A stretch of DNA of 64,000 bases from Macrostomum hystrix (Eukaryota; Animalia; Platyhelminthes), in NCBI GenBank assembly GCA_950097015.1, contig CATNEN010000009.1, positions 186,001-250,000 of the forward strand, given 5' to 3'. A model generated the notes under the pieces. That model was not told the DNA's origin. It saw only the letters and a list, made by a program, of their open reading frames with translations, and did not search any database. The position numbers and the translations under genes were made by a program. The first letter of the stretch is position 1. Every line of letters begins with the position of its first letter. Below are positions 1 through 63,716 of the stretch, piece by piece.

Positions 1-203
1 GTATTACGAGCGTATGATTCTTAGGCGTCTTAGTCGCTTTTCGAAGTATCATGCATGTAAAATAGGTCACACGAGGTCATACTCGAGGTCATATGTCATA
101 CTCGTACACATCAAAGTTTTGACTTGTACAAATGGCAGCAATTACTTATTTGTTATATTTTTCCGTATACACGCAAACCTAAAACGTATTGCTGTAAGTA
201 TAG

Positions 204-1328
204 CTATATAATATAGTCTTTGTGACCACCCTGCACGATGGGGATCAGGACCCCGTCGCTGATGGATGTGTGGCTATATCCATCTCGATGGCCCTTAGTT
301 ACGAGAGGATTCTGTTTGGGATCTTGCCATGAGAGATATATAGTTCGATGAACCATAAAAGAACCAAGCAACTCTACAAAGGCAGCTGTCGATACTGTCC
401 AATGACAAGAGTTTTTCTCAAGATCTGCAATTACAAGGCTTGGATACGCGCTGCAGACCTGCGTAATTGTTGTTGTAAGCGTTTGAAAAGCGCTTACATC
501 GATGTATTGAAAAAATTTTAAAAAAATATATTGAAAATACCGAATAGTCAACGTCAAACCTGCTGGCTGCACGTTTTCTCGTGGGAGCAGTCATAGCTCT
601 GAAATTTCCGTCAGAGCATAGGATCAAGGCTACCGAAAATGTGCACTTCGGGAAATTGACTCAGGACAAGTCGAACTGGGTGTGCTTATAGAAACTTGAG
701 ACCTTGGTGCGAGAGGCAAACACATTAGACCTCTCTGCCACTCACCTAAGCCTGAAAATCACGCTTGAGACCTTGGTGCGAGAGGCAAACATATTAGACC
801 TCTCTGCCACTCACCTAAGCCTGAAAATCACGCTTGAGACCTTGGTGCGAGAGGCAAACACATTGGACCTCTCTGCCACTCACCTAAGCCTGAAAATCAC
901 GCTTGAGACCTTGGTGCGAGAGGCAAACACATTAGACCTCTCTGCCACTCACCCAAGCCTGAAAATCACGCTTGAGACCTTGGTGCGAGAGGCAAACACA
1001 TTAGACCTCTCTGCCACTCACCCAAGCCTGAAAATCACGCTTGAGACCTTGGTGCGAGAGGCAAACATATTAGACCTCTCTGCCACTCACCCAAGCCTGA
1101 AAATCACGCTTGAGACCTTGGTGCGAGAGGCAAACACATTAGACCTCTCTGCCACTCACCCAAGCCTGAAAATCACGCTTGAGACCTTGGTGCGAGAGGC
1201 AAACACATTGGACCTCTCTGCCACTCACCCAAGCCTGAAAATCACGCTTGAGACCTTGGTGCGAGAGGCAAACACATTAGACTGCTCTGCCACTCACCCC
1301 CTCTAGTCAGCGACTTGGTTGGCAACGT
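204..1328 (-). CDS. Putative 3' exons of an uncharacterised gene (exons 1328-1298, 629-541, 458-204)
   Basis: Canonical donors (GGGG|gtgagt at 1297, TCG|gtattt at 540) and acceptors (ttttcggtag|, ttacgcag|) join in the only open phase: TLPTKSLTRG-ALILCSDGNFRAMTAPTRKRAASRFDVDYS-VCSAYPSLVIADLEKNSCHW...GGHKDYII*. No family recognised, no start found. Confidence 0.3.
695..1298. repeat. 69-bp minisatellite, about 9 copies
   Basis: Unit cttgagaccttggtgcgagaggcaaacacattagacctctctgccactcacccaagcctgaaaatcacg recurs at 695, 764, 833 and so on. The 200-aa ORF 704-1306 is its translation, not a gene. Confidence 0.97.
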
Positions 1329-1811
1329 CTAATTGATCTCTCCTTATATTTTTTCTATAATGCCTGAGCGCATTCTTCTTATTGAGAGCCATGCAGGCAG
1401 ACAAGAAACAGTTAAGAAGAATAAAGAAATAGCAAATGTACCATCCTGCCAAGGAAAGGGCCTGCTAACTCAACCCGTTTTGACTCAAGCCCGCGATGAC
1501 TGGCCTCAGTAAAGGGCTGTAGCAGTCTGCGCATTCATTGGGGCCGGCATAATGAAAATACGAGTTTACTAGTCAGCGCTGCAGGCTGGTCTCAAGCATC
1601 ATGGGCACGAGACCAGCGGCTTTTAATCGTGTTGACTGACCCTAAATGGACACCCAACTAGACACGTGCACGTGGCCCACCCCACCCAGAGCAGAGAGAC
1701 CAGGCATTCAACGCTGCAATAAAACAGCCATGCAGCTGCCGCATCGCATATGAGGCAGCGATAAAGTAAACAAGCTTGAGCTAGTTACCCGAATTTGCAC
1801 TCCGAAAAATA

Positions 1812-4668: not shown

Positions 4669-7600
4669 TCATTCTCCACAACCCCTCTCGTGTTTGTCCT
4701 TCTCATGCTCGGTGACAAAGTCCTGGCCGCACTTGGCACAATGCACTATACTGCCCGGATGCTTGCGCAAGTAGTGAGCTTTAAGTGTGCAGTTCTGCGC
4801 TGTTGAGTAGTCACAGTCGCGACACTTGTATGGCCGCTCGCCAGTGTGTTTACGGATGTGCACGGTGAGGTGGCTCTTCTCGACTGTTGTGTACTCGCAG
4901 GTGGGACACTTGTGCGGCTTTGAGAGGCTGTGTTGCGACATCACGTGCTTGCGAAGGTGAATGTTCTGCCGATAGATTTTTGAGCACTGGGTGCACCTGT
5001 ATTGAGAGAAAAGTAAACCTGGAGGTGAGTCTGAACCTTGGAGTCTACGATTATGCTAACCCCGATCGGAAGTCATGGGTTCTACTTTGCACAGACTGAG
5101 CTGCTGAATCGCAGGAATTAAACGCTGCCACTGCTTTGTGCTCAGGCTTTTAACTCGTCAGTACCATCTGATATTGGTTCAGTCACACTACTTGCAGCAG
5201 TACATCAGAAATAGTACTGCTTTTTTAGCATCGCTGTTGCACAACAATTACTCGTAAATTTTTGCTCACGAAAATGCGACGTCTCGATAATTCTGGATTT
5301 TGGCTTCAACTTTAGCAAAGTACTTCGTAGGATATTACAAGTAGAAAGACCACACTATTCCCCCGTATATTTCAAACACCAACTGCCTAGCTCCCAAACC
5401 GAAAGACCGATTTTTGGAAAAGCTCACAGTATGGATAAGCCTCGATGGCGAATTCATATTGGTTGATTAATATAAAATGTAACTATATGATCAATACATA
5501 TAAACAATAATTGCCGAAATGGTTTTGTTAGCAGAAAAAATAGGCATAGACTTTTAGTGGTTTTTGCCACCAGACACCCCGACGAGAACCGTTGAATATC
5601 TCGACAATGCGATGTTTTGGGGTTCGGCAAGCTCGGATAGAACGGAAAATTTTTGCTCGTGTTCTGGATTTTGTGGCGATTGGTTGAATATATTCGGAGA
5701 TAGAGAAAAAAACAAAACATGTGGGCATTGGAAATACAAGTGCAAGACTCTCTCACCTGTACTTTAGTTCCTTCACCTTCTTCAGCTTTTTTGGGGACCG
5801 GTGACTGATTGGCGCAAGTTGCAGATGCTGCGGCTCCTGCTCAAGATGAATCTGCTGATGCAGCTGAGCTGGATGCTGCGAATGTACATCGTGCGGCAGG
5901 GAGACGTGGCTCGAGTGTGACGAGGCAACAACTGTGCCAGCGTTGGTGAGTAGTTCCTGAGACATGTACAGCGGCTGCGGCTGAGGCTGCTGGTTCAGCA
6001 GGTGCTGCTGCTGCGGCTCCTGTGGGGTGGAGTTTCTAATTCAGATCTAGACTCACATAACAGAACAACAAGTAGTTCAAATATCTGTGAATCTAACCAA
6101 AAATGAAAGGCGGAAGTTGATAAGCAATAAATTATGACAGTAAAGCATATACTCGTATATGGCCTCTGAATCTATTACCCAATAGGAGCAAAGATTATTA
6201 AACCTCAGCTTACCTGCTGCTGAGAGAACACGGGATAGGCAGGTGTAGCCGCCAGATGAGTAGAGTCCGTTTCCATTCCTCCAGTCAGAGCTGCCGAGAA
6301 TCCACCTTCGCTACTATCGCCGAACTGCACGCAGTGGTTTGACGTAAAGTACATCGCCGACTCATCGCCAGGCGGTGGCGTCTGCACTATGGGGGCAGAA
6401 GAAGTGGCCGCAGTCACCATGGAGTCAGTCAGCGGCCCGCCGACGGATTGGGCTACGCGGCTTACGGTTTGAATAGCCTTGCAGGGTGCCGCGGCGCCTG
6501 TTGGGTGCCGGAGGTTAGTTTGTGCTTCCTCCCCAGTCTCGGCCAGTAGAGAGGGCACCTCTGCGCCGTCCAGTAGCATGTCGACATCAAAGTCTAGTGT
6601 CACAACAAAGTCCGTCTGGCTGCTCGTACTGTGAACGGACCTGCAGACGGAATTCCGGAAAGTTCTATTTGTGATTCCAAAGGTGAAGTCAGTAAAGAAA
6701 ATATTTGTGTCAGATTATTTAAGAGGTTAGCAATAACTACGCAATATGGGTTCGAGGAAAGTAATATTGCGTCCAGCCAAAAACATTGCGGTCATACTAC
6801 AAACCCTTAGCAAGAAAATTTTTATCGTAAGCTTCTATCTCGCAGTGTAAACTTCTGCGCTAAAGTGTTAAAGGCGTTAAGCGCTTGAATCAAGATAAAG
6901 TCTGGCTCGATATTGCAGCGGGCAGTTTTGAAGCACCAGCTTCAAAATTCGTGCCGATGAAGTATATTGGTATCGGTTCCAATACCATACGGTATACCAA
7001 TCGTGATATTGGCATATTAATGCTCTCGCAATATACGAGTAGCATGCTTGTTGCAGTCACTTTGGATATTCTGTGATACCCTTGCAAGGTGCGAGACGCA
7101 AGCTGGAATTGGCGGTGTGTATGTTTGCTGCAACAAGCTGGCCTACCTAGAGTGCAGATCAAGTAAGGCAGCTGGCATATTTTTCTAATTACATTTTTAG
7201 AGAAACCAAGACTAGCCACAAAGAAAGCACAAAGAAAGATTTGAATCGAAAAAGAATTTAACTTGCGTGCGAGTTTCCATGAAGTTTGGATTAATAATAA
7301 TGTCTTTGCTTCCACTTCCAATTCAATCAGCTAATAGCAAATTAGGATTAGGGGGGATACATTTTTAATAATTCGAAAGAGGAAACATCAATCTTCAATT
7401 ACGCCGCCTGCTTACCTGGGACCCGGCGTCGCTACCTTCTGGCAACAGCTGGGCGAGCACTCGATCTTCACTGCAGCGCAGCATAGGGGCGGTGGTGGAG
7501 GTAGCGACACATAACCCGAGGACGTTGTAGCCTGTGTCTGCTGCGGCGTCTGCGGCGTCGGTGGCTGCCCCGACGGTGACTGGCGAGCGGACGAAGCTGG

Positions 7601-8152: not shown

Positions 8153-11100
8153 CCTGTACACTTCTCCTTGCGTGTATGCGTTGGCCTTCACTGGGCTGCT
8201 ACACTTTTCGCTCTCGCTCTGCAGTGTGGCCTCTGTTCTGCCCTATCCTTCCAGTCCTATATTATTAGCACGTAACGGAGACGGCTTAAAAAGCCAGGCC
8301 GGAGAGTTGGGTAGAGGCGGTCATTTGAATTTTACACTGTACAAAACACTAACACCCTCTACGCAGAGGTCTGGAGTGTGAGAGAGAGCGTGGACGGGCA
8401 GGATGGACCTTCGACCCTCCGCTTAAGCTTTCGAAAGCCAGGCTATGTACATGCGTTCTTCCGTCCTTCCCCGAAGCTCTCTCCACATAGAGGAGACAGA
8501 CAGAGCGCGCGCTGTCTGTATCTTAATCACTCCCAGCGCTCTCCTCCACGCTGCCTTCCCCCAGCATAGTGTGCACACCCACCCTTGTGCTTTCGTTTCA
8601 CTTTACTTGCAGCAGACTGCAAGCTGCATTCCAACTACGCGCTTGCTGGCCTTTGACGGGTAGCAATATTTGAGTCATCTGTAGTAGGGATTCGAACGGC
8701 TGGGTAAAATATTACAGTGGTACTCTGCTGAAGCCAGTCCCAAGTGGCCTTCACTGAGTGCAGTTATACACTACTGACAAATAGTTTTCTTAATAAAGCT
8801 TTCACGTTGTACATTCAATATCGTTTTGGATTGCTAGCTACATTTATTTGCAATTTATTTTCTTTATTTAATGAACGAATGAATCGCAAATCAATTTTGG
8901 GTGACAAAGATTTCAATGCGGCTTCTTTAAGTGACATCGTGAATTAGATTTCTGGCTTTCGCGAAAAGCATGAACAAAGATCTTGAAATTATTAAAGCTC
9001 CTGAGAGGGGACAGGAGCATGCAGCTTTCTTCCTGCACCGAAGACGATTCGACCAGGGCTCTTGAGCTTCAGAATGACAGGACGTCGCATTCCTCCAAGA
9101 TCATCTCAAATTACACAGGATGGGGAAGACTTCCATCCGCTATTACCAGCCATTAATTGTCCCATTGTGCCATGATCTACTCCACGGTCCATGGACTGAA
9201 CAGCTGTCCATTGCACTTGGAAGCGCCGCATGATAGTTGCGGGTGTCACTGGCTGGGTCATATGAGCCGAAGAATACACCATTCTGCGTATTGCTATTGC
9301 CAGAAACCACTGTATTTTGCTATAGGAACCCGCTCTGCTTTATCGGCTACGCACTTTGTGTATTTAAACAATCAGCACGCATTCTATCTTGATCAGTACT
9401 ACCAGCAATACTAATAGTAATAATAATAATAGTTGATTACACCTGCCTCAATCGGGCCGGATTTACAGCCGACAGCATAGCTGCAACTTTTGCGCTGTGA
9501 ATCTGAAGTCTGTGTCTATGGACTGCGGGGCGCCACACCCACCCTCAGTTACTGCAGCTAATGCTGGTACCGAATAATCAGCTGGTTTAATTAAACCCAG
9601 CCTAAACTAAGCCTTACTAAAAAGGACACGAATTATTGCAGTGGAGTAGTGAATTGAACCCGTGTGTCCGACACTCTAAAGCCTTAGGCTACAACGCCCT
9701 ACGCTCCTACCAATACGAGTAGCAGTGCTTCAGCGCCCAATACTGCCTCAGCGCCCTACGTTTATTGAAGGTATTTGAAACAGTTTTTGTGTTTGCCTTT
9801 GTCCGAAAACCTTTCGTACAGCGGCGTCCAGTAAAGCAGCGACTAAATAAGATTTAATAGGAACGATTTTTATGACAGCAGCGCCTCATGCAGTTTTCAG
9901 CTTAAGCCTCGTGCTTTTTCAAATCGAGAGGCAAAGTTTGTGCCATGATTTTCACTGCTTCGTCTGAACTTCTGAAGTTCTGAACTTCTGAAGTCTGAAC
10001 TTCTGAAGTGCAAATAGAGTCGCAACGAAAATAGCGCAGTTTTTGGGCCAAAACCAGCTTCCCATTATAGTTGAGACTGAATAGTAGTTGAGGAGCTTGC
10101 CCTTCACTAAACCTCAGTGCGCTAACTGAGCTTCCCAAAAATGAGCCAGCTCGGAAGTGCAAATGTATTGACTAGCACATTTGGTAATTAAATGCTAAAA
10201 CCATATACATTCGCACACAAGCCTAAATGTTGGTGGAAAAATAGATTCGCAAAAGATTTACCGAAAAAAGCTCTAAAGTCGGCAGAATAATTATTTTTGC
10301 ATACTGTGAGATGTACGTACGCTTCGTATACGTAAAATATTTAACTCACTTTTGTGTTTAAAACTAACTGAGGGATACGTAAGCCTTTTATTACTGGCCC
10401 CTTGATCGTACGAGTACAACGCTTCGTCCCTTACTATCCTAGTAGGGCATTGTGCATGCCACCTTCCTCAGTTCGAATAAGTATTGAAGAGAAGGAAGTG
10501 AGGTGATTGCCTTCATACTACTCGTATATACAAATTTATTGGTGCAATATTAAGATCGGATTCTCAAAAAGTTTCTTGATGAAAATAAAATAAGTTCTGC
10601 CCAGGAGCCAAAATCTGCCTTCAATGTGCTCAAAAAAGTATGTTGTTTCTGATTCTGAAAGAATCGCTTGTTTCTGAAGCGAAAAAGCATTAAATCCACT
10701 TCAGATTTCAATGCTCAATTAATTTAATCGTACTTCAAATTTATTTAGTCTCCTTATCCTTCTCCCTAGCATGGTTGTCTTCGTGAGTTACGGCTTCCAA
10801 TAAACAAAAAAATCGGCCTCAAAGCGATGGTCAGAAGCCAGCTCATTCGCTGATTTCACTCAGCTCGTTTGGCTTTGAACTGGATGGGCTCTAAATCAAA
10901 TCATTAAATCATCAAATCACTGAATAACAAGAAATTTCGCATTGTCGTGAGACTGTCTTGTGTAGTAGAATTGTGAGAGGCATTTATCAAACACCAGCAT
11001 AATAGTGATATTTCTATAAAATGCATTAATTATTTCTTGTCTAGGTATTGAAAAAGTTCCGAGAACTTTCCTGGGCTAGGAAATACTAGTTCTCTATATC

Positions 11101-12163: not shown

Positions 12164-15100
12164 ATGGCTGTACCGAGGATCACCTTTCACCAAATTACGA
12201 TCATCACCCTATGCTTCGGCCTCTCCTGCTCCATCGCCTCCTGTGCCACTCGGGCCTGGCAACATGGTGGTCTCTTTGATCTGCCCAGCGAAGGTGAGAT
12301 TGTCATTTGGCGAGTCTCGAGCTTACGTGCTGGAACAAATGAGTTTTGGGGATCGAGTGATTGATTTGTGTTGATTCGATTTGGCCAGAGCACATACTGA
12401 ACAGTTTAACTGTAGCCAGTTCCTTTGATTTGTCAGTTAAGTACGGGTTCCGAATGTCTTGATAAATGTGGGAAGATTTCTTAAACAGTGTGTCAGGAAT
12501 GCTTGAGAAGTGTGGAAAAGTGCTTGATCAGTTTGGGAAGTGTAGGAACTGCTTTTCCTTTTGAATTTGCGTTATGTTCTTTTCCTTTATTTTCAACTGC
12601 CCGTCGGATTTATCATAGTTTATAATTTCTCCAATCAACTAATAATTGCGCCGCCCTGCACTTTTATTAATTTTGGCTTATATCTTCATTTAGTTCATAG
12701 AATCCTTTCTTCTGGCTAGCCCCTTGGTTATTCATAAATTGTTGTCAACATTTTATTTCCTCGCCCGATACAGATCCCAATTTCGTTCTTCCAAAGTTTG
12801 CCAACTTATATGTTTAATAAAAGCTTCACCAAATGTTCTCGTTCTCTAATTTATATCAGAACTGTGTCCAAAGACTACTTAAACACTCAAGGCGTGAAAC
12901 TCGCAAATCATGGCGAAAAGAGTACTTCATGAGGCTCGTTGAAAAGCATTGTTCTATGACCAAGCCGCATGCCAATATCAGGCATTTAGGCTTCGATGTT
13001 TATAGGAGATTTAGCTAACTAGAAAAACAAAGGAAAAGAGATACCGTTTCTTGTTTGCAAATCGTTCCAATGCTAAGAAACTGTATAAAAAGCAAACATG
13101 GGAAGAGAAAAAAATATAAAAGTTCTGAAGCCTTGCCTCGTTCAGGCGCATTTACCAGGCACTTAACATCACGTTTGCCTAGTTACTGGGACACGTCGGT
13201 GACTAAGAATGTGTCTTAAATATTTGTTTGATCAAACATGACTCTTTTCACACCCATTTTGCAGCTCGTGGTAATTGTAGCTCTAAGCACAGAGGGAATT
13301 TATTTGGAGATTTAAATTATTTTTTATGTGACTCATAACAAATTATAGTAACAATTTAGGCAAACGTAGCAAATATATGTTTATTGTTGCGTTTGTATAA
13401 TGCGGCTTGGCCAGAGAACAATGCTTTTCAAGGAGCCTCATAATTTTCCCTATGATTTGCGAGTTTCCCGTCCTGAGTGATTAATTAGTCCTTGGTTGGA
13501 CCTATCGTAATTTAAATTGACTTTTGTCCAAGCGACAGGAAGAGTGCTTTCAAGCATTACAGGAGACTTCTTGTGCAGTGCGGGGGGAGTCTGGGTTTTT
13601 CGGGAACTGTACTTTAGGAGTATAGGAAGAGTACATTAGCAGTGCAAGAAGAGATATTGGGCAATCGTTGGGGAAGTCTGCGGGTTTTTCGGGAACTGTA
13701 CTTTAGGAGTATAGGAAGAGTACATTAGCAGTGCAAGAAGAGATATTGGGCAATCGTTGGGGAAGTCTGCGGGTTTTTCGGGAACTGTACTTTAGGAGTA
13801 TAGGAAGAGTACATTAGCAGTGCAAGACGAGATATTGGGCAATCGTTGGGGGAGTCTGCGGGTTGTGCGGGAATAGTGCTTGAGCAGTGCGGGTCTGTGG
13901 GTCCCTCACGAATAGTAAAGTCAGAAGGTAGGGGTTTATCCAGGTACGAGTAGCTAGTGGCTTGATTGCTGGGTCTGGAATTTTCGAAGAGGCATCTTTT
14001 GTACGGATCATGTGAGCAATTCGGAAGCCAGTTTTTATATTGCTGTTTCAGCTTCATCATCATCAACATCACAATTGCCCACTTATCTCTACTATTCTAG
14101 CCTGGGCCAACACGATCAAGGCCTTCGCCATAATAGGCGTGGCTATGCTTGGTTTCAGCCTGTTTATGGAGATCCTCATGGTGGCATCCAACACCTTCAA
14201 GCTGAGCCGCGCTATGCACCTGCTCTGCTTCATCTGCTGCTTGCTGTCAGGTGCGTATCTTGTAAAACAACTGAGAAGTACTTTGCTCTCGAAGTAAAAT
14301 TGTATACACCTGCTCTGCTTCATCTGCTGCTTGCTGTCAGGTGCGTATCTTGTAAAACAACTGAGAAGTACTTTGCTCTCGAAGTAAAATTGTATACACC
14401 TGCTCTGCTTCATCTGCTGCTTGCTGTCAGGTGCGTATCTTGTAAAACAACTGAGAAGTACTTTGCTCTCGAAGTAAAATTGTATACACCTGCTCTGCTT
14501 CATCTGCTGCTTGCTGTCAGGTGCGTATCTTGTAAAACAACTGAGAAGTACTTTGCTCTCGAAGTAAAATTGTATACACCTGCTCTGCTTCATCTGCTGC
14601 TTGCTGTCAGGTGCGTATCTTGTAAAACAACTGAGAAGTACTTTGCTCTCGAAGTAAAATTGTATACATCACCATTTGCTCACCTCGTTCAATCCCACCA
14701 AGTTCAAATATCGGTCTAAAAATGGGTGCAACGCTTGTAGGAAGAACATATGAGATTCCGATTCTCATCATCATTCATTTCACTATCTTCTCTTCCCTCT
14801 CTTCCCATGCATCAGCCCGTGTCGTAACAGCTTCGCGTCACTTTCTTTCATCTGTAATCGTCTTCATCAGCTGGGAATACCCAGCTTCTATCATTGACTC
14901 ACCTACCTTTCCTTTTCACCACCATCGTCTTCCATCGACGCCTCCCTTTGCATCATTATTTACTTTTATCATGTACCTGCTTCATCAGCTGGGACTATCC
15001 AGCTTCTATCATACACTCACCTACCTTTCCCTTTCACCATTATCGTCTTTTGTTTCATTTCAATCACCTTTCTTTCTGTCATCCTCTGACATCAGCTGAG

Positions 15101-15443: not shown

Positions 15444-16399
15444 ATGTGAGCGGCAACACAGTTTACATTGAAACATCTTAATTAATCGCTTCGCTAAATT
15501 CGAATTTCTGCTATATGCAGGCTACTACTAGTAGAGCCATGTGTGTCGTTAAGTCCAGAATACTCGTACCTGTGCGTTCATGAGCATGAACTCCTTCTGG
15601 ACTAGGTAATATTGTTTTTTATGTTTTGTTATTTATAATAATAGTAGTGCTAAACAGCACTTGCTTATTGTTTGTTTCTCAAAGTAAATTTATCGTGAAA
15701 AGGCTGGTCTGATAAGTTCCAATTCTTTTTCATCCTACTACTAGATTGGAGACCCTCTGCTAGCTCGTATTTGTGATTGGAGTGCAGCTAACAGTTCGCA
15801 CGGAAAACTGTCTTGCTTCCATAACTGACTTGTTTGAAATTCGCATTAACATGCAAAAATTCACCTAATCTCGATAATTGCATCACAAAAGGCATGTTCT
15901 ATTTTTTTCCCGACAGAACCTACTTTCAGTCTTATCCTTCACTCGCATCAAACCGCATATTTTCTATATACGCTCCATACATATCCAAAGCGCATAGCAA
16001 CCCCTAAAATTTGAGCCTAAATTTAGTGAAATCATTGCACCTACCACACATTGTTGTTTCAAAACTTTACCCAGTTTATTAACGCAAGGAGGATCCCTTG
16101 TTGTTTCAACGTTTTACAGTTTAATTCTACAAGTTACAGTTCCTCCTTGAATAAATTCCCTATATGTACTCGTAAAAGCGATAAGAAGTTTTTCACTATC
16201 CCCAAGCTAACCAATCAGCAAAGAAATATATCCCTGTTCGTCTAATCGTCTCACAATAACCCTTTCAATGTACCTCTTTTGACAAATGTCTTCTCTTGGT
16301 TTGGAAAATAAACTCATAAATAGTTGAAAATGTACCAAATTAATCCCGACTCTGAAACTTCATTTCTTTTAACCACTTCGTCAAAACAAGTGGTTTTTT

Positions 16400-18720
16400 A
16401 TTTTCTGCAAAACGGAAGTAATTTGCGAAGCGGCATGCCTTTGCAACCGAAACTATCCTCATTAAGTTCAGGAATTGGAGAGTTAGACAGATCTGTGCTT
16501 GAACAGCTCTCTATAGCTAAACATATACGAGTAGCTCGCATATAGCGAGAGACACACGGTTCAAGAGAAGTCCGCGAGTAAAAATGGAAGATAATTGATA
16601 CTAAGAAAGGTTTGACTATACTGTGTAGAGTAAAGGCAGCTAATATAAGATCAGAACGCAGACAAGAGATTATAATAAGAGAAAGGAAAAAGAGAAAGCC
16701 GATTAGTGCAGATCGATGAGGGCGCTTCACGTGTACACAGCGGAGGCCTAGGCCCGGCCCGCTGCTGCACCCGTCAAGGCCCCAGCGAATTTGGCGCTGC
16801 AGTTGCTTGTTGGAGAAGGGCAAGATGGGCTGAGCGCAGCTTGACCTGACGACCTTCAGAGCTTCAACTGGCCACGTCTCGGCGAATGTAAAACCAGACG
16901 CGCTAATAGGACATGGACATTTGAAGCGCCTGGGTTCGAAAGGGCCTGTTAAGGATTGTGTACTCTCACTTACCGATGTTAGAAGTGACTGCGTACGAAC
17001 GAGGGCAGGTGGCTATTGAAGAGACCTCCGCTGTCCGTCGCTTCCTTTTACAGAGATCTGCAGACCCCCACCTACTCTGCTATTGGATGACTGCTTCGAA
17101 AATCGATCCTATACCGATCTGTTTAGTAAGGTGAGGTGATGTGAGGGAAGAGGGGTTGGGTCGGGGGGATAATGGAAGCCAGTGAGAATCGATTTTTTTG
17201 GTTGTGTAACATTTAGGTCCAAAGAAAGGGTGCTTGGGCCGAACCTCATGGGTATGCGGGGCCTGAGGGTTGCATAACACTTTCGTCCTTGCTGGCGGCT
17301 TGCTTTGCCTGTGTGCGCCATGTAATTCTTCTGTGGTGATACGCCTCAGAAGAATTGGGCAAAGGCGGTCGAGCCTATCGTGCCCTGCCTTCCTACGAGT
17401 ATTATAAACCATTGTCTCTGTCTCTGGCGTAACACTTGAACCCGCTGGGGCTTTGGATTTTAGATCCTTAATAGAAAGGGAGACAAACAGGAAAATTGAA
17501 CTGGATGATAGGGATGATGCAATGGTCCAAATTATTCGAAAGGAGGTTGTTCTGTTCAATTTGATCTAAAAGTGAACACGTACATCCGAATGGAACTTGC
17601 GAATTGCGCAATGACAGCTAGGGCGTCACATTGAATTAGCCGAAGGTTATAAGGTGATTGCAAGCTAGGAGATAAAAGTAAGAATGACTCAATAGCTGCC
17701 TCATGGGTGGCAAGGAATCAGAGAGCTATAGGCGATCCCTGGGTCCATTGTTACTCAGACAAAATTGCGATGGAGCCTCTTCAATTACTATAGCATGTGC
17801 GTATCGAGTTAGAGAACAGAATTATCTTACCGAGTCTTCCTGCTCCAAGTATTCGGGACTGAATGGGCCAGTTCTGTGTGGGTTGTGGCTGGGTGGGCTA
17901 TCCATGAACTTTCAACGATCTGAATTTTAAACAGCAGAGACCCCCACCAGTTCCAGCCATCGGATATCACTGGGTTGGGCCGCCCAGGTGATTCAGATTG
18001 CAGGCCTGGCAACAGTTGGCCTCCAAAAGAGCCAGAGCGGCTTGGCCCGGGTTCAGTAACGTGAGACTCGGCGCTCGTTTTTAATAGGCTCGCAAACTGA
18101 TAAAGAGACTCCCGGCCCTGAAATGTAGCAAAACACTCGCTGTTGAGGGCAGTGTGGAGTGGCGAGCGCTGAGTCACGGTGCCCTCTCTGATTGAATGGG
18201 CCCAGTGGGATGCAATGGAACTCGCGTCTCAGCCTCGAGTGAGTCAAAGGAGGGCAGGACTTGGACGAAATCCAGACCGAAGATTCGCTTTCTTTGTTGC
18301 GAGCGATTTTTCAGTCGAGCAGGACCTCGGCGCTGCCTGAATTGAAAATGGAATCCACAGGGAAACACATTTGATAGCATGCAATCGGCTCTTGCTTTAT
18401 CCTCGGCCAACAGTCTATTCTTACCTAATAAAGCATTCTATTCTACTTAAGGAACTAAGTGAAAGCTTCATACAGAAATATATCTGGAGAATGATGGAGG
18501 TGTAAAATTGCATGGCGTTATGGCGTGAAGCCATGCCATAATTATCATATCGGTGCGCAAACAACCCAGTGTGAGATGACTATCTGCGGCCCTTTCATTC
18601 GGCCAATTCCTAATGCTTATCTAGATTCTTAATTGTATACCGTGATAACGGAGAACAGAGTCTAAAAGACTCACCTTGTCGACTCACTTTCGTCACTTCA
18701 GAGCTTCGGAATTCTCCAGT
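16400..18720 (-). CDS. Possible uncharacterised multi-exon gene
   Basis: Several minus-strand donors (gtaag near 18425, 17829 and 16970; gtgagt near 18676) and acceptors flank GC-rich open segments such as RQRRGPARLKNRSQQRKRIFGLDFVQVLPSF and ECFATFQGRESLYQF...SRKTR. I could not close a complete stop-free model or recognise a family. Confidence 0.3.
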
Positions 18721-19267: not shown

Positions 19268-22170
19268 TGCCGTCTGATCTGGTGTCACTTTCGTCTGTTG
19301 TATGCCACTGTCCTCTGATATATTCCCCTATCGTCTGGTGTATCCCACTGTCGTCTGACATATCCCCCTGTCCTCTGATATATTCCCCTATCGTCCGGTG
19401 TATCCCACTATCATCTGATATATTCCCCTATCGTCCGGTGTATCCCACAGTCCTCTGATATATTCCCCTATCGTCCGGTGTATCCCACTGTCGTCTGATA
19501 TATTCCCCTATCGTCCGGTGTATCCCCCTGTCCTCTGATATATTCCCCTATCGTCCGGTGTATCCCACTGTCGTCTGACATATCCCCCTGTCCTCAGATA
19601 TATTCCCCTATCGTCCGGTGTATCCCACTGTCGTCTGACATATCCCCCTGTCCTCAGATATATTCCCCTATCGTCCGGTGTATCCCACTGTCGTCTGACA
19701 TATCCCCCTGTCCTCAGATATATTCCCCTACTATCGTCCGGTGTATCCCACTATCATCTGATATATTCCCCTATCGTCCGGTGTATCCCACTATCATCTG
19801 ATATATTCCCCTATCGTCCGGTGTATCCCACTATCAACTGATATATTCCCCTATCGTCCGGTGTATCCCACTATCATCTGATATATTCCCCTATCGTCCG
19901 GTGTATCCCACTATCATCTGATATATTCCCCTATCGTCTGGTGTATCCCACTGTCCTCTGATATATTCCCCTAACGTCTGGTGTATCCCACTGTCGTCTG
20001 ACATATCCCCCTGTCCTCTGATATATCCCACTATCGTCTGGTGTATCCCACTGTCCTCTGATATATTCCCCTATCGTCCGGTGTATCCCACTGTCCTCTG
20101 ATATATTCCCCTATCGTCCGGTGTATCCCACTGTCGTCTGACATATCCCACTGTCGTCTGATATATTCCCCTGTCGTCTGGTATATCCCACTATCGTCTG
20201 ATATATCCCACTATCGTCAGTTTTATCCCACTATCGTCTGACATATCCCACATTTGTCTGATATCCCCCTGTCGTCTGACATATCCCACAGTCGTCTGAT
20301 ATATCCCACAGTCGTCTGGTATATCCCACAATCGTCTGACATACCCCCCTGTCGTCTGACATATCCCACAATCGTCTGATATATCCCACAGTCGTCTGAC
20401 ATATCCCCCTGTCGTCTGACATATCCCACAGTCGTCTGACATATCCCCCTGTCGTCTGACATATCCCAAAATCGTCTGATATATCCCACAGTTGTCTGAC
20501 ATATCCCCCTGTCGTCTGACATGTCCCACAGTCGTCTGACATATCCCACAGTCGTCTGATATATCCCACAATCGTCTGATATATCCCACTATCGTCTGAT
20601 TTATCCCACAATCGTCTGACATATCCCACAGTCGTCTGATACTCGTATATCCCACTATCGTCTGATATATCCCACTATCGTCTGATTTATCCCACAATCG
20701 TCTGACATATCCCACAGTCGTCTGATACTCGTATATCCCACTATCGTCTGATATATCCCACAATCGTCTGTTTTATCCCACTATCGTCTGACATATCCCC
20801 CTGTCGTCTGACATATCCCAAAATCGTCTGATATATCCCACAGTTGTCTGACATATCCCCCTGTCGTCTTACATGTCCCACAGTCGTCTGACATATCCCA
20901 CAGTCGTCTGATATATACCACAGCCGTCTGATATATCCCACAATCGTCTGATATATCCCACAGTTGTCTGACATATCCCCCTGTCGTCTTACATGTCCCA
21001 CAGTCGTCTGACATATCCCACAGTCGTCTGATATATACCACAGTCGTCTGATATATCCCACAATCGTCTGATATATCCCACTATCGTCTGATTTATCCCA
21101 CAGTCGTCTGACATATCCCACAGTCGTCTGGTATATACCACAGTCGTCTGATATATCCCACAGTTGTCTGACATATCCCCCTGTCGTCTTACATGTCCCA
21201 CAGTCGTCTGATATATCCCACTATCGTCTGATTTATCCCACAGTCGTCTGATATATCCCACAATCGTCTGATATATCCCACAGTCGTCTGATATATCACA
21301 CAGTTGTCTGACATATCCCCCTGTCGTCTTACATGTCCCACAGTCGTCTGACATATCCCAAAATCGTCTGATATATCCCACAATCGTCTGATATATCCCA
21401 CAGTCGTCTGATATATCCCACAATCGTCTGATATATCCCACTATCGTCTGATTTATCCCACAATCGTCTGACATATCCCACAGTCGTCTGATATATCCCA
21501 CTATTGTCTGATATATCCCACAATCGTCTGTTTTATCCCAATATCGTCTGACATATCCCACATTTGTCTGATATCCCCCTGTCGTCTGACATATCCCACA
21601 GTCGTCTGATATATCCCACAATCGTCTGATATATTCCACAGTCGTCTGACATATCCCACAATCGTCTGATATATCCCACAGTCATCTGACATATCCCACA
21701 GTCGTCTGATATATCCCACAGTCGTCTGATATATCCCACAGTCGTCTGACATATCCCACAGTCGTCTGACATATCCCAAAGTGGTCTGACATATCCCACA
21801 ATCGTCTGATATATCCCTCTATCGTCTGATTTATCCCACAATCGTCTCACATATCCCACAGTCGTCTGACATATCCCACAGTCGTCTGACATATCCCACT
21901 GTCGTCTGACATATCCCACAGTCGTCTGATATATCCCACAATCGTCTGATATATCCCACAATCGTCTGATATATCCCACAATCGTCTGATATATCCCACA
22001 ATTGTCTGATATATCCCACAGTCGTCTGACATACCCCCCTGTCGTCTGACATATCCCACAATCGTCTGATATATCGCACAGGCGTCTGACATATCCCCTG
22101 TCGTCTGACATATCTCACAGTCGTCTGACATATCCCACAATCGTCTGATATATCTCACTATCGTCTGATT
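19268..22170. repeat. 20-bp minisatellite, about 145 copies (consensus atatcccacagtcgtctgac)
   Basis: Continuous 2.9-kb array. The left part is a 40-bp dimer (tattcccctatcgtccggtgtatcccactgtcgtctgata). All ORFs from 20191 to 22197 are artefacts. Confidence 0.98.
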
Positions 22171-22832
22171 TATCCCACTCAAGTAGAAGTAGCTCATGTA
22201 GCCTAGGCTATAATAGTCCTTCTAGAGCTCTAATTCGTGAGTTCCTTGATAGTAGACATGTATACAAGCGTATGCTAATAAGTATTTGCTGCTTGCGGCG
22301 TCATGCAGTTTAAATACTCGGTAGCCTGAAAATAATCCTTCTAACAAGCTTTTTGAATCGTGCTCTAACTGACAGTTAGCTATATAAACTCAATTCATAT
22401 TCTTCTCACCAGCTTCCAGCCAGCTTCACACTCCGGTTCAGCCAAAACTAAGCTCGCTAATTTATGAAAAGTAATTAATAGCCGTACCGAGACAAAAAAC
22501 GCAAGCTATTCGCTTGCCAAATTCTCTAACACAAATAAGAGGTCGGTGTAAAATGTTAGGTTACGTACACAGTGACAAAATAATTGACGGTATTTTATCT
22601 GAAGTAAAAATTACGAGTATATTCAGATCTTTATGATGTAAAAGTGCGTGAAACTATGCATGCAGATTTATGCATGCAAAAATCTGAGATAATTTCACAG
22701 TTATGTGTATATGTATATACGTCCAGAAATATTCTCAACTCCCTACTATAAGTAGATATGGCTGACATTTTTGGTCAGAAGAGTTTGCTTTTTGTTAAAC
22801 AACATGGTAAGAACTCAATTAAACCGAGTTTC

Positions 22833-23978: not shown

Positions 23979-24926
23979 CGATGTTGTGGGGATTGTGCAC
24001 ACGTAGCTACTCGTAGTTATCCTAGGTTTAACTGGGTCTCACGTCTTGACGCTCTGGGTCTCGAAAATTCGCGACTTTTCAAGGCTTGAGACGAAAAGTA
24101 AGGGCAGAAGGGCGAGTGGGGTTGCAATCCGTGTGAAACCCAGGCAACGCAAAAGAGACCACAACGACAAACAATGGAGCGAGCGCAAATGATTGTACAC
24201 TACAATTGTCTCTCTCCTCTCTCTAGCTCTGCAGTCAGTTGGATGGTCGCACTATTCGAGTTCCATGGGGGTAGAGGGGGAGGGACCTACAGAAATATAT
24301 GGTGGGTGTGGCAAGGAATGTACCCGTGAAGACAGCTCAGCGTTCCTACAGCTGGCTAGGAAAAAGTAAAAAATACAACTTTTGATGCTCAAGTGGTCCG
24401 CTTTGTATTGCTTGGAGCAGCTGCTGTTGTAATTATCGGCAGGTGACGACCTAGATTATGGATCGCTTTCATAGAATGTATAGAAAGTAGATCTAACAGT
24501 TTTTTGCCACCGAATTTTTCAATACTGTTTCGCGTTTTTTAATTTTGCTTCAATCGTCAAGTTTAGTATTAAAACAACATGCAGTGAGCAGCTCTGTGGA
24601 TGAATCTACCTCTTATTTCTCTACACTTGAGAGCGAAATACTTCTGACTCTGAGGCAAAAAAACGCATCAAAATGCCTTTCTACCCAAGTACACTTAGAC
24701 TCACTAGTACATTATGCGAGTGTACAGCAGAATGCACGCCCACTTTCTTACCCCGACTCGCATACCCTACCATATAGAGCCGTTGCCCTTGACAACCCAG
24801 AGAGCAGAGCTCTCTTGGCGGAATTTTAAAATGGCTAAGCCAGGGAGGGTGCTTCTACGTGCTTCTCGTTATACAGAAATTCGCATCAAAACGATTCTCA
24901 GGAGTTACGAGATCCGTTAGGCCAGC

Positions 24927-54280: not shown

Positions 54281-55401
54281 AATTATGAGTACTTGCCTGC
54301 GCAATTTAGCAAGCCGCAAAGACACTGGACACAAAATTTTCCAAGAATTTGGAAAGTTAGATAATATATTTGAAAGATTTTACACAGTCGGAAAGCACAA
54401 ACTACAAGCTGAAGTCGTTAACGTTAACTTCTCAAACTGTAGTACTCTGTAAAATGAGCAGCCCTTCGATCAACGTCAGCATATTTGCTTCGAAATTTCT
54501 CAATCATAGTATTAGTATGGAAAGGAGACGACTTTACCCTAGTCTACCTTTGCAACTAGTATTATAGTAGTATAGTATTAGTAATAAGTATATGGTATGC
54601 CAGTGCAATAAAATGAATCCCAGACAACATTATTTTCAGGATAACTTACTAAGAAGCTTACCTTATAGCATGTGCACAGCTACAACAGTGTTGTAAGTAC
54701 TTACATTTTATTTTTAGTCTTACGAGCGTATTACAAAGCAGATTTTTTTCACAAAAAAGACGGAAAAATCATGGGACTTTTTAAGCAGAAAACGAGCATG
54801 AAATGACGAATCACTGCTGGTTACACTCCAGCAAGCATGATAAGATGAGCATACGAGTAATAATGAAGTTCGAAAGCTCTAGTTTTGTACATGTACATCA
54901 TCATGTGTATGCAACAAAATGGTAGACTTTTTGGGCAGTCACTTGGTGAGCTACTTACAATCGTTTTTCCAATATTTTGGTTCAAAAAACCAGTCTGATA
55001 CAATTCTGGCCACGAATCAGAAATATAGTATCATCCAGACATAAATTAAGAATACGGGGCCTCACTTTTGGGCATAATGTGCTCAAGAACATTTTCACAA
55101 CAGTTGCATAAACTAATCTGTAAAATATATAGTGATGAAAAAGAGCTGAACAATTAAGACCGATTTTAGTCATACAAACCTGATAGGGAAACCTTACGCA
55201 TACGAGTCAATAACCGACATTTAAGCAGCATACAGCATACAGTCGGAATAAAGCCAAGTAAAAGAATTGTATTTTGCATGTCTTATGTCATAGGAGAAAT
55301 CAGTAGAGGCAAACCACAGCAACAGCAAGATAGTAGGAAAATCTTGGCAAATGAAAATCCAGACACATTGGATACTTTCGAAGTAAAATCTATTTTTGGT
55401 T

Positions 55402-56673: not shown

Positions 56674-57217
56674 TCTGTGTGTTTCTAAAAATAGCACCTG
56701 AAACGAATCTATACAAATTAACCTTTATCACATTTAATATGCTGGGGGAATTCTATGGCTTGTAAGGTGTTAAATTCTGCAGTAGTTTACGACTGTCTAT
56801 TAACTGCTTATTGCTTATTGCTGCTTGCGCACTGTAATCTTTCGAAATACGAATTTTTAGTTATTTTTTACTCGTAACTTAATTGCAATATACAAAAAAG
56901 TAAAACAGAAATAAAAAACTACCAAAATTCAGAGCTAATTTAAGTCAGACCCACAGAACTTACAAGCAACGCTTTAGTGAGCTCTGTAATTAGCTTAACC
57001 ACAAACTGATTAAAGTACGAGTATATTTGTTAATTGCCTGATTGCTGACAGAAAAACAGGACTACCACAAACACAAAGTATTAAATATTTTGTCCTAACG
57101 TGATTATTACGTAAGAAGATCGAAGATGCGACAGTGATTCACCCGGTTTGTCAAATAGCCTACTAGAATAAGGATACCAAAGCACAACTAGCATTGTATG
57201 AGCTTAGATCCTCCAGC

Positions 57218-58057: not shown

Positions 58058-58345
58058 GTGCGCAGGAAGCTGAAATTTAGGCAAGCAAATTTGTAATTCT
58101 ACTATCAATATGACTTCCAAATACCGAGCGTAGATAAAGAAAGCAAATATATATTCAAAGCGAAAATTATTTAAATTTCATTAGGAAAGGAGACGACATT
58201 ACCCTAGTCTACCTTTGCAACTACAAAGACTGGTCCAGAACTGACAAGGGGTATACGATAATTTACCACAGAAACTTGTAAATGTAAGCCGAATTGGCTG
58301 CCAGGAGAGCCAGGGAGAGTATCTTTCCTTAGTGCTTCCTTGCAA

Positions 58346-58482
58346 GAGTGGCTACGCTCCCTTGTATTGGCTAAGAGTGGCTACGCTCCCTTGTATTGGC
58401 TAAGAGTGGCTACGCTCCCTTGTATTGGCTAAGAGTGGCTACGCTCCCTTGTATTGGCTAAGAGTGGCTAAGAGTGGCTAAG
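58346..58482. repeat. 29-bp minisatellite, 4 copies plus 10-bp tails, upstream of Ran
   Basis: gagtggctacgctcccttgtattggctaa at 58346, 58375, 58404 and 58433. Confidence 0.93.
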
Positions 58483-61019
58483 CTAATCAAATGAATCAAA
58501 GCCATAAAGACTATCAAGCCAAATCAACAAAAATACCAGGTTTATGATTATCTATCTAAGCAAGTACTGTATATGCAAGACAGTGTTTGAGTATTCAACT
58601 CATTATTTAAGCAATTCCTGACTGCAGACAATAACCTTCTAGCCATAGTGGCAGCAACCTACCCAACTACCCTGTCTAATGACTTGAGCTTAGAGTACTT
58701 CAACTAAGGCTTTCAATTTAGCCACTTGTCTGCGAGTTGTCTTAAGATTTTTAGTAGTTGTAGTTTCAAAGATTATGAAAGAGACAAAAAAGAATTTTCA
58801 ATGATGTTTATGTTTACATTTTTATGAAGTTTTAAGCTCAGTCACAGACAAGCCATACAATTTTTTCAATTAAAGTGTGGCTAAATATTTTTTGTTTTCA
58901 GTGGTTATTGTTTTTCAAAGGAGTCTATGTAACTTTTTTACCCTACTTAACACTTTTATCTGTGCTTTTTTATCTGCATTTACTTTTAACTGCCTTTAGA
59001 TCAATTAATTATTTGAATTATGCATCATCAACTATTCAAATCACATTCATAATTAAAATCAGCAATGAACAAATAGTCAAGATCGTCATATTAAATTGAA
59101 TATTGTGACACTTTTGCTCAAATCGTCATCATCATATGACATTTTAGAATATGACGATTTGATCTGTACCTGCCATGGGACCCCTCTTTAAAGTAGCTAG
59201 CTCAGCATTAGCAAATAGGGTTTTTATGTACAGATAGCCTTCTTTGCCAATAGTTAGGGCCTAGGAGCTAATGTAGCAAAGAAATATTGCCATTGGAATA
59301 TGTGTAAGTCCATAACTAGCTAGGTTCTATTCACTTCATCTGCCACTATCTTGTTTGCCAACAGACAAGTTCACTTATTTGTAAGCAAATTAAATTCATG
59401 AGCAGATGAATAATTTGCACATAGCATTTGATTTGATTGCCATTAAAGCAAGCCAAATAACCTGATCAATATGAACTTGTGCATTGTATACAAATTTTAT
59501 CAATAAACTATTTTATTTTATGATGATTAAATCTGTTGCAAGTGGCTTTGTTTCTATAGTTTGTATGGCAGATGAGTTTGTATGAAGTTTCTTTTAAAGA
59601 CAAGTTAAAAGCAGATGAGATGGTGGCAGACATAAAGACTAGAAACCTATAGGCCCAACTATAAGGACAAAGTAATGGGCAAGGACAAGACAAAATGAAG
59701 AATAGAGAAGGCCTAATAGACCAAAAATACAGACTAGGGCCTATGCCTATGCACCACCAGAATTTTTCTTTTTGTTGTTAATTTTATATAGACAAACTTC
59801 AATTAGCACTAAAACTTATTTATATCTCAATAAATAAATAGGCCTATGGCAATGGCCATAGGGCATAGGCCTAGCATTAGCAATAAACAAACAAGCAAGG
59901 AGACAGACAAATTGGCTTATTAATCTAGCTAGGCCTATGATTGATCTAGAGCATATTAATCATTAATAGTTAAGGGGGGTGTGGGCAATGGCATCATTTG
60001 GTAGTATGTAAGCAGTATAATGTATGCAGCTGATGAGGAGAGAGGGTGAGTGGCAGAGTTGAATGAAAAGCTGAATGCATTTTCCGCATTTCTTTGCCTT
60101 TGCCGCTTATTTCATGCAGAATTTGGCTGAAGAAACTAGTGAATAACTGCGACACTGGTGATACTGCATGCATCCGATATCTGGAACTTCGATCCTTCAA
60201 TTAAATTTTTAGCTACGTTGCGTTTTTTTTATTAGTTTACAATACCGGCCAACTTTTATGTGGTAACAAATGTGAAAAAGGCAGCATATAAATTATTTTA
60301 CTATCTCACTGTACCTTTGTAAATATGAATTTTTAGTTGCGGTATGTTTAATTTTTCAGTGCCCCTCCACGATAATATTTCCTCTGCTTTACTATACAAA
60401 GGTTATGCTGCGAAGGTCTTTCCAGAATTTTCTTTTTGTACTCGTATAACATTCGCTGAAACGCGACCGCAACGTATTAAACGACCCTCACTACAATCGC
60501 GAGTTATAGGCTTTCTATCCCTGCACTGGCAAGTTGTGAATGCTTTGCTATAATTAAGCTCCCTTTTCACCGAGCCAATTCCCGTGATTGTTTATCTATA
60601 AATTTAAAGCAATTTCTCTCACGCAAAACAGGCCCGTTTGACTTTCGAGCTAAGTCAAATTATGCGCACTCGGCTACATATATTGGATAACAGAGCAAAA
60701 TTTCTGATTGCTCCGTAGGATATTTGTAGTAAAATATCAATAAACAATAGCTATGAACTCTAAAAATGTTTAAACCCACGTTACCAGTATACTTGCGCCC
60801 CAATTGCGGTTGGCAAAAGTTTTGTATAACTAAACAGTGTTGTGTGCGCATTACCAAAGAAGTAACGGCGATGGTGGTAACGATTGTTACTGACCCAACG
60901 ACCACTAGAAGAAGAAGCACAGAACACATAGTTTCTTGGAAAAATGTATTAAAGGCTGATTGGCAATAAACGATAAATAAACGAAAATAAAATAAAAATC
61001 ATCATTTATTTATAATGAA

Positions 61020-61905
61020 GCTTTCTATTGACTTACTTGACTTAGCTGCAGTGCGCGGTCCCATGGAGGAACGCAGCGGGAAGGCGATGCCGCCCATTCC
61101 GCTAGTCCCTGAACGGCCAACGCACCGTCAAGGACGAGGAGTTGGCGTCGCCCAGGGAGCTCCCTCGGAGTCGCTCTCCGCAGCCACGTCGCTCCCTGAA
61201 GAGGCTGTATGGCTGCCTTTATGGCTGCCTGCTATTCTGTATGGCTGCGGGTGGCCCGAAGGTAGCGCATGAGCTGATTGAAGTTTTCGGGTTTACATGC
61301 TTCCTGGATGGAAGTGTGTGGCCCGAGATAGTTAATTCTGTCCCGCATGAAGGCGGGGCAGATGCTGACAAAATGTACCGTTCAGCGGTTTCGTCACCTG
61401 AGTTGCAAAAACTACAGGTAGCGTTGGTAACATTCCTGCATGCAGGTATTGGTGCCTGGTGAAGCACCCATGCCCAGACAGGGTCATGGTGGCCCCTCGG
61501 ATGTCCTTGCGCGGGAGACGCAGAATGAGGTTCCGGAGTTGGCGGGAGGGCTGCGGAACAGCCTCTCTAATAGATTGCCTGCAGGTTTTGCAGTTCGCCC
61601 AGAGTGAGTAGTGCTGAGTTTTCTCCACGCTTTGATGTGTGAGTTGATGACACAGTTTGGGACCGGAACCAGAGGTTCGGGTCCCCAGCAGGAGGATCCA
61701 GTGGCACCGGCTTTTGCTAGAGCGTCAGCCAGCTCGTTGCCCTGAAATCCTCGTGTCCGGGCACCCAGGGTGACCTTGTTCGTGGAGGCCAACATGTTGA
61801 GATGCTTGATACAGTCAAGGACCGTTGCCGAGCCAATGCAGCGACTGCCGATGGCACACAGCACTGCCTGACTGTCAGAGTGGAAGATGATATCCTTCTA
61901 CCTTT
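61020..61905 (-). mobile_element. 5'-truncated, frameshifted non-LTR retrotransposon (RNase H plus C-terminal domain; I-group, LOA/Lian-like)
   Basis: KDIIFHSDSQAVL, WVPGH (shifted frame), GNELADALAKAG, GPEPLVP, WANCKTCRQ, LSGHG and FCNSGDETAE spread over three frames. The 3' end carries short aagtcaa repeats. Confidence 0.85.
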
Positions 61906-63716
61906 CACGATAAGCTTTCTATAAAATTCGTTCAAGCAACATGTTTTGCAATATATATTAAGAGAACAGCATTGGATCTGCTTCGATTAAAAAGTTTTCA
62001 ACATTTTAATGTGAAAAGGTGAACATTTCCTTTCTCGTTAGTGCGCCTTTAATAATTTTCCAAGAAACAAAGTGTCCCCTTTCTTTTTCTAGTGGTCCAA
62101 GAATATGGAATTATAGACTAACAATTATTTAAGTGGTTATATAGAGGAAAAACCACATATCAGGTCTCATGAGAGTGGTGTGACATATTATGTCAGCAAC
62201 CGTGTGGAGTACTAAATCAAAGGTGACTGGGCACTGTGATTGGCTCAGGCTAGATCTCGCATGGCTTCTCTCAAATTTTTCCACTTTGAACCCCTTTCAA
62301 CCCTCCCCTCTCCACTACTGGTATTTTAATCACCAGAATTTAATAAGGCACATTGGCGGGAGCCGTGCAGAAGTTGTGAGGTGGTGTCGACAAAAGCATC
62401 GAGCACAAAGTTTCTGCTGTTAAGCTAAAATATATGAATTCCTTAGTTGGCTATAGATTCTTGATTTAATACTCTGTTTTAACTGTTGTGGAAGTGAATG
62501 ATGGTTCCTCAGGATCAATCCTAGATACTCGGACATAGCAATTTCTGTGCCTGCCTGCTCAGTGACGTTGCTCAGTTGCTCACTTAGACACGATGCCAAA
62601 AACCAAGCCGTCTGCAGTAAAAAGCCGGAATTCACCGAAATGTCATTTTTCTCTTTTTCTCACATTACGAGTACAAATAATGCACGAGGCGAATCTGCCT
62701 GGTTCTTCTCAGGACAAAGCAAATTGACAAGACACGTTTCGCTTTTAAACATCTGAAATACTCAATGTACATGGATTTTACAGCTCATTACACTGATAAA
62801 GTTGTAAGTAAAAGTATACTCGTAGAATCAAGCAGTTAATGAGCGTTAGTGTAGTGACTTTGATAATTCAGCCGTGCCAGGATAGCAGATTTCGAAGGCC
62901 AGTCACTGGATGACGCTCACTCCAATGCTGGCCCTATAGACCTGCGCTTCAGACAATTTCAGTCACGCGCTTTGAGTTTGAGTCGCAGAAGTTAAACGAG
63001 AAATATGCTAACTCTAATGAGGCTAAATATTCAAATTTTCATTCGCAAGATTGAGACTGAGTCTCTGACTTGTATCTCGCGGCTGCCATTCCTTCGGGAA
63101 CTAATTAATTGGTTTATCGATCGCATGCAGCCTTAAGATATCTATATTAGTATCCTAAATGTCTGATTCATACCAACGACTCATGGGGCATCGAATTCCA
63201 AGGCATTATAGTCTATTTATAGAAGATCGAGTTAGAGTTATAGTAACGTTTTCCTGACTGTCCTTTTGTACCCACACCCACACCCACACGGTATGGACAT
63301 CAGAACCAAATATTCTGTATGGCTGTTATTTTAAATATACGAGTAGTGTGTGTACATGCTGTAGACTGGATCGAAATCGTGCCTAGAAATTAGAGTCCGA
63401 TTAGAGTTCGAGTTGGATTCTTTCGAACAAGCAGCAAGGTGACACGAATTATTCTTTCCACTATTGCTACTGAGACAGCATTGATAATTTACCTTGCTTG
63501 GTTGCATCGGTGCTGCAAGCAATTAAATTGTTTTGAATTTTGTCCTAGAACTGTTCCGAAAATTAGCCCACCTATGTTTCTAATTGGACAATAAGCCCAG
63601 CCAATAGATTTTCTTCTTTCCCTTTCTACAAAGCCTTACTTTCGATGTCCCCATTCTTCCGATGATTTGCGACCACAAAATTCGGCAGCATCGCCTTTTA
63701 ACCCATTTCTCCAACA

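Follow-up and report, generated by a model that had tools for sequence, protein, structure and literature searches.

Which process places the same exact 8-nucleotide word, in either orientation, once in every few kilobases of a flatworm genome? This question is raised by a stretch of 64,000 nucleotides from Macrostomum hystrix (assembly GCA_950097015.1, contig CATNEN010000009.1, positions 186,001 to 250,000 of the forward strand), hereafter referred to as the window, in which the octamer TACTCGTA, parsed as TA-CTCG-TA, recurs. A first-pass annotation, made from the letters alone, had interpreted the copies as the remnants that a TA-targeting element with CGAG/CTCG ends leaves on excision. This interpretation gains direct support from the comparisons below, in which the octamer proves to be an insertion of 6 bp accompanied by a duplicated TA; the putative source element is also discussed. 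The octamer is very probably the excision footprint of a Minos-like DNA transposon of the Tc1 family; the documented precedent is Minos and not an Hsmar2-type mariner, which the annotation had named. The mechanism is already known, and it is the density of the scars that is unusual.

Abundance and anatomy of the octamer

Pattern matching on both strands reveals 26 exact copies of the octamer in the window, 13 on the plus and 13 on the minus strand, and all coordinates and strands given by the first-pass annotation, including the 13:13 split, correspond to exact matches. The expected number is 0.9-1.6 under Markov models of order 1-4, while 100 dinucleotide shuffles of the window averaged 1.08 copies, with 4 at most. 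The enrichment suspected by the annotation is thus borne out against a Markov background, and its rough expectation of 2-3 copies was slightly high. With a spacing of about one copy per 2.5 kb (~0.4 per kb, 25 times background), the octamer is the strongest k-mer anomaly of the sequence and the sole outlier among the TA-N(3-8)-TA words of the window; the remaining strongly enriched 8-mers all come from tandem arrays. Masking of the 18 tandem arrays leaves 24 copies in 49.7 kb (Poisson P ~4e-25). The copies at 20640 and 20726 have identical 40-nt flanks within one tandem array and count as one event, which brings the number of independent events to 25.

The edges of the octamer are sharp, since A follows TACTCGT in 26 of 26 cases and T precedes ACTCGTA in 26 of 29. 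One-mismatch neighbours in the window number 31 and are barely above the expectation of ~24-26, so that few copies have decayed; set against the 26 intact copies, the excess of ~5-7 neighbours suggests, by rough estimate, a mean per-site divergence of ~3% since scarring. Apart from the pair at 20640 and 20726, the 40-nt flanks of the sites are mutually unrelated. Such unique flanks rule out that the octamer is part of a longer dispersed repeat, be it a miniature inverted-repeat transposable element (MITE) or a solo inverted repeat. No sequence in common was found inward of TACGAG or TACTCG in 106 kb, which comprise the window and two loci of Macrostomum lignano introduced in the next section. 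The copies are not significantly clustered along the window (chi-square ~8.5, 7 degrees of freedom), as calculated by hand from counts per 8 kb weighted by TA density. The annotation had placed no copy in a confidently called exon, and indeed exons backed by spliced contigs, Pfam or conservation in M. lignano contain none of the sites; with about one tenth of the window being coding, the absence of all 26 scars from exons is not by itself significant.

Insertional origin and occurrence in Macrostomum lignano

The origin of the octamer can be read directly from a 20-bp tandem array at 19286-22179, whose units are joined by ATATA (30 times) or ACATA (21 times). Alignment within the array reveals that the two octamer-bearing units (20640..20647 and 20726..20733, both on the plus strand) are 26 bp rather than 20 bp long and carry the junction ATA-CTCGTA-TA, a 6-bp insertion at TA. 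The unit is restored once the six letters are removed, and TA has therefore become TA-CTCG-TA. The second of these scars is a copy of the first, produced by an 86-bp duplication within the array.

A second line of evidence was obtained from M. lignano. The best database relative of the PAQR open reading frame (ORF) of the window is an M. lignano protein with 74% identity, which is encoded at two loci, L001 and L002, both with the gene order ADAR-HOATZ-PAQR. The two loci are homeologs and 96% identical. At position 277 of L002 an octamer is present where L001 reads TATATA, and the alignment shows a clean 6-bp indel. In the array units as well as in the M. lignano homeologs, a single TA occupies the empty site, and the scar is bounded by the duplicated TA; these are empty TA sites of the kind that the first-pass annotation had proposed to look for.

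The 21-kb loci L001 and L002 (NCBI assembly) contain 3 and 7 octamers, respectively, against 0.2-0.3 expected, and these are divided 5:5 between the plus and minus strands. At two sites the octamer has stayed intact in both homeologs; at two more it is intact in only one of them, the other having a single substitution (TATTCGTA, TATGAGTA). Three of the L002 octamers lie inside a ~4-kb insertion with a MULE transposase that is private to L002. The existence of shared, decayed and homeolog-private sites indicates that scarring ran before and after the divergence of the homeologs and that the activity was long-lived. None of the sites in L001 and L002 matches a site of the syntenic window in position or flank, and the scars have therefore been gained independently in both lineages.

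The pre-insertion targets reconstructed from the window have an adjacent second TA in 11 of 25 cases, compared with 15% of all window TAs (p=5e-4), and favour W (A/T) at position -3 (43 of 50 symmetrised counts vs ~60%). A preference for TA repeats as targets is typical of Tc1-like elements. Contigs from other samples carry the sites at 5249 and 7034. One of the runs, X2, is labelled as a different organism, yet it shows zero differences from the window.

Two further observations concern the M. lignano loci. In the private insertion of L002 (3254-7210), the minus-strand ORF 4515-5948 codes for a MULE transposase of 477 aa that has a FLYWCH finger; nothing closer to it than ~36% identity is present in the protein collection. 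In L001, TACATGTA, a Tc1-type 2+2 footprint, occurs 9 times vs ~1 expected, with ~7 occurrences being independent; it is located at 3728, 14361, 14885, 18738, 19115, 19583 and in a TACATG microsatellite at 9332-9351, and one copy is situated 17 bp from a TACTCGTA scar. The window contains 3 copies of this word, which is no enrichment.

Probable excision footprint and proposed mechanism

When a Tc1/mariner element excises, its transposase cleaves the non-transferred strand a few nucleotides into the element; after end joining, 2-4 nt from the beginning or the end of the element remain between two TAs (PMC6943129). For Minos, one and the same primer (TACGAGCCCCAACC..., TACGAGCCCC...) serves for amplification from either inverted repeat, so that the ends of Minos read CGAG directly next to the target TA (PMC3680223). 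Minos is further known to leave a characteristic 6-bp footprint (PMC3386967, PMC10992017). Since 6 bp correspond to four terminal letters plus one TA, the scar of Minos should be TACGAGTA or its complement TACTCGTA. The four letters enclosed by the two TAs of the Macrostomum octamer are identical with the Minos terminus. The first-pass annotation had regarded a 4-nt footprint as atypical, which does not hold: four nucleotides are the characteristic footprint of Minos and fall in the 2-4 nt range of Tc1/mariner elements (PMC6943129).

The following sequence of events would account for the octamer. The element would insert at TA and duplicate it. On excision, the transposase would cut the non-transferred strand four nucleotides inside each end, and a 3' overhang, 5'-CGAG-3', would stay on both flanks. 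The two overhangs, being identical, could anneal by C:G pairing at the outer positions, with two mismatches in the centre, and repair or replication would then resolve the heteroduplex with equal chance to TA-CGAG-TA or to the complement TA-CTCG-TA. The net outcome would be a heritable 6-bp insertion at the former TA. Because either strand can fix one orientation, an equal split between strands is predicted, as is observed. A heteroduplex model of this type was reportedly put forward by Arca et al. in 1997. We infer the existence, now or in the past, of such an element in Macrostomum, together with its 4-nt stagger and the heteroduplex step.

The stagger was also worked out by hand. With perfect inverted repeats, neither a 2-nt nor a 3-nt stagger yields the octamer, while a 4-nt overhang does; symmetric models with CTC, CGA or a 2-nt overhang were rejected on this ground. 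Two longer words may represent further products of the same reaction. TA-CGAGCG-TA (TACGAGCGTA) occurs twice in the window (5..14 and 54721..54730, both on the plus strand) vs 0.03 expected, and TA-CGAGC-TA (TACGAGCTA) is found twice in the window (15761..15769 and 35939..35947, both on the minus strand) vs 0.32 expected and three times in L001 vs 0.05, all of these being small numbers. These candidate variant scars would fit imprecise repair beside the canonical scar. In addition, of the 16 occurrences of TACGAG outside octamers, 9 have C as the next base vs a background of 26% (p=0.011), which hints that the terminus may read CGAGC, as in Minos.

Comparison with known systems places the scars closest to Minos of Drosophila hydei, with which they share the TA target, the 6-bp scar, its letters as deduced from the CGAG terminus of Minos next to TA, and the occurrence of both orientations. 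Minos scars, however, stem from induced excisions at single loci in flies and heterologous hosts, whereas those of Macrostomum are natural, fixed and present every ~2.5-4 kb, and their element is a putative one. Sleeping Beauty leaves TACAGTA/TACTGTA and resembles the proposed system in the TA duplication with terminal nucleotides, in identical 3' overhangs that pair with a central mismatch and in two complementary outcomes (PMC6943129). In contrast to the presumed 4-nt stagger of Macrostomum, with its 6 bp and preserved frame, it has a 3-nt stagger and a net insertion of 5 bp, by which the frame is shifted. Tc1 and Tc3 of C. elegans (TA-CA-TG-TA type) likewise leave TA-flanked remnants of the element ends that are joined by end joining, but their stagger is 2 nt, the scar is palindromic, and most of what is known of it comes from the reversion of mutants, not from a k-mer signal across the genome.

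Search for the putative source element

Several results weigh against a Minos-like origin. Neither an element flanked by TA with CGAG...CTCG termini nor, in six frames, a SPDLNPIE-type motif of a Tc1-type transposase was detected in the 106 kb, so that the element with such termini and a transposase envisaged by the first-pass annotation did not appear there. All pairs of TACGAG/CTCGTA and of TACTCG/CGAGTA within 8 kb of each other in the window were checked for inverted repeats, and only scar-scar pairs turned up. A density of one scar per 2.5 kb demands very many fixed hit-and-run events. Six window sites were compared with contigs of four runs, three of which behave as RNA, and neither a 6-bp polymorphism, nor an empty or occupied allele, nor a homeolog contig was found among them; with runs of this kind, the comparison says little about empty alleles. 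Lastly, the exact letters of the Minos footprint are a deduction from its terminus and from the description "6-bp footprint".

The absence of the element from 106 kb is weak counter-evidence, since a sample of that size will usually contain no member of a family with up to a few thousand copies. Three word-based protein searches reached no Macrostomum Tc1 transposase: the search with the PAQR ORF returned the M. lignano orthologue only, and those with the MULE ORF and a 393-aa ORF of L002 returned only distant matches from outside Macrostomum. We found no mention of the octamer in this sense in the literature, and it is absent from the Macrostomum genome paper.

Alternative explanations

The reading that survives best next to a Minos-like footprint, with a probability that we consider small, is a scar of a different TA-targeting element. 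An element with unequal ends (CT.../...CG) and a Tc1-like 2-nt stagger would produce TA-CT-CG-TA, and a member of another TA-duplicating superfamily might do likewise. Any element of this sort would explain a 6-bp insertion that duplicates TA, and a source element by which the matter could be decided was not seen. Imperfect terminal repeats would be required, however, and a random 4-mer would coincide with the Minos terminus or its complement with a chance of 2/256. The enriched TACGAGC... extensions also point to a Minos-like CGAGC terminus.

Less probable still is a dispersed functional site that selection keeps exact, for instance a motif bound by a transcription factor, an insulator protein or some other protein; a dispersed protein-binding motif was the alternative offered by the first-pass annotation. 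All eight positions are exact with few degenerate variants, as strong selection on a binding motif could bring about, and the octamer is enriched in two species. Its origin as a TA-duplicating insertion, even within a satellite array, and its presence in one homeolog with absence from the other are nevertheless at odds with a conserved binding site. The same holds for the lack of a fixed position and of significant clustering, for the lack of positions common to the window and the syntenic M. lignano loci, and for the decay of shared copies to TATTCGTA and TATGAGTA by ordinary substitutions. The annotation's alternative is contradicted by these findings.

A very improbable reading is programmed developmental excision by a domesticated transposase, the assembled DNA being the post-excision state of germline-limited elements. 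Abundant scars with zero element copies in 106 kb are what such a process would yield, but any family that numbers less than a few thousand copies would be expected to give the same zero. Moreover, the scars are inherited, common to M. lignano homeologs and decaying, they have empty counterparts that were never occupied, and at the six sites compared, the DNA contigs reveal no occupied alternative. A sequencing or assembly artefact (adapter or polishing residue), which has nothing in its favour beyond the oddity of an exact 8-mer, can practically be dismissed, as the octamer is present in contigs of other samples and of another study and in the NCBI assembly of another species, where it has undergone evolutionary decay between homeologs.

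Implications of a probable Minos-like footprint

We tentatively entertain the further possibility, which must be regarded as doubtful, that a Minos-like transposon is hyperactive in the germ line of Macrostomum to this day, or was so until very recently, and hops in and out so often that its scars far outnumber its copies. In that case the number of scars per genome would plausibly be 10^5 or more, provided that the window is representative. Past transposition could then be counted from the octamers, new in-frame 6-bp indels would arise steadily, and a native vector of high efficiency would be at hand for a model flatworm where foreign transposon systems have failed.

Excision footprints are usually studied locus by locus. 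Should the signal be genome-wide, the history and rate of transposition could be read from the scars (intact vs decayed; shared between homeologs vs private), and these genomes would owe a large share of their 6-bp indels to hit-and-run transposition. The scars would also point to a native Minos-like element usable for transgenesis in M. lignano, a regeneration model, in which Minos-based and meganuclease-based integration have been tried without transposase-mediated success (PMC5730564). For annotators, the case is a reminder that exactness and enrichment alone do not make an 8-mer a regulatory motif.

Distribution of the probable scars in the window

The scars are found in introns, a transcribed 3' region, intergenic DNA, a satellite and the spacers between arrays, with no fixed place relative to genes. 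The first (99..106, plus strand) lies in unannotated DNA with unique flanks, upstream of a 69-bp array. Three scars are associated with a BCL11-like zinc-finger gene on the minus strand. The one at 5249..5256 (plus) is situated in its transcribed 3' region and is unchanged in contigs of runs X2 and X3. The scar at 6150..6157 (plus) is inside the intron 6019-6212, whose spliced joint 6018>6213 (CT..AC) was observed in X2, X3 and X5, and that at 7034..7041 (minus) is inside the intron 6639-7413 (joint 6638>7414) and is unchanged in unspliced X2 and X3 contigs. Non-coding DNA further harbours the scars at 9714..9721 and 10409..10416 (both minus) and at 10519..10526 (plus), the latter followed by TATA.

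The scar at 13945..13952 (minus) falls in a probable intron between the conserved exons 12146-12319 and 14079-14257, and the one at 15561..15568 (plus) lies 121 bp past the conserved exon 15297-15440. Intergenic sites follow at 16167..16174 (plus), 16526..16533 (minus) and 17394..17401 (minus), the last two inside ORFs with no Pfam match. Beyond the pair in the 20-bp array, the scar at 22612..22619 (minus) is ~214 bp downstream of the PAQR/HlyIII stop codon, in the probable 3' UTR (untranslated region), and the scar at 24008..24015 (plus) is located between PAQR and HOATZ, ~30 bp upstream of the first ATG of PAQR. AT-rich intergenic DNA surrounds the scar at 34556..34563 (plus), while those at 40192..40199 and 42004..42011 (both minus) each lie between two tandem arrays. 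The remaining scars are all in non-coding DNA: 54852..54859 (minus), 56869..56876 (plus), 57016..57023 (minus), 60439..60446 (plus), 62666..62673 (minus), 62817..62824 (plus) and 63338..63345 (minus), the last followed by TAT.

Neighbouring genes, arrays and repeats

The exons of the BCL11-like gene are set by spliced contigs of three runs and by Pfam, and the CT..AC dinucleotides are present at both of its joints. A small gene at 12.1-15.4 kb has exons that are conserved in M. lignano. Pfam further identifies PAQR/HlyIII, HOATZ-like and ADAR genes as well as FAM194, zf-MYND and Ras-like exons. The gene order ADAR - HOATZ-like - PAQR (22833-31272) is common to both M. lignano homeologs, with 74-83% protein identity, and the window accordingly belongs to a Macrostomum species other than M. 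lignano. No exact look-up match is on record for the proteins of the window.

The 18 tandem arrays are distributed between 695 and 58470 and make up ~22% of the window (14 kb). Their periods range from 16 to 96 bp, most are 96-99% homogeneous, and long spurious ORFs arise from many of them. Two segments, 5557-5737 and 9531-9571, reach several hundred times single-copy depth in the source run and are fragments of high-copy repeats; they were considered as MITEs of the scar family and rejected, because their ends do not read CGAG.

A local cluster of TA-GGCC-TA-type words, with near-variants nearby, is located at 59255-59937. TAGGGCCTA occurs at 59255 and 59735, and TAGGCCTA at 59839, 59866 and 59930. 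Window-wide, such words are only mildly above chance (3 vs 0.9; 2 vs 0.33). Their clustering is nevertheless striking. No more than 700 bp hold all five, at the upstream side of the Ras-like exon, which is on the minus strand.

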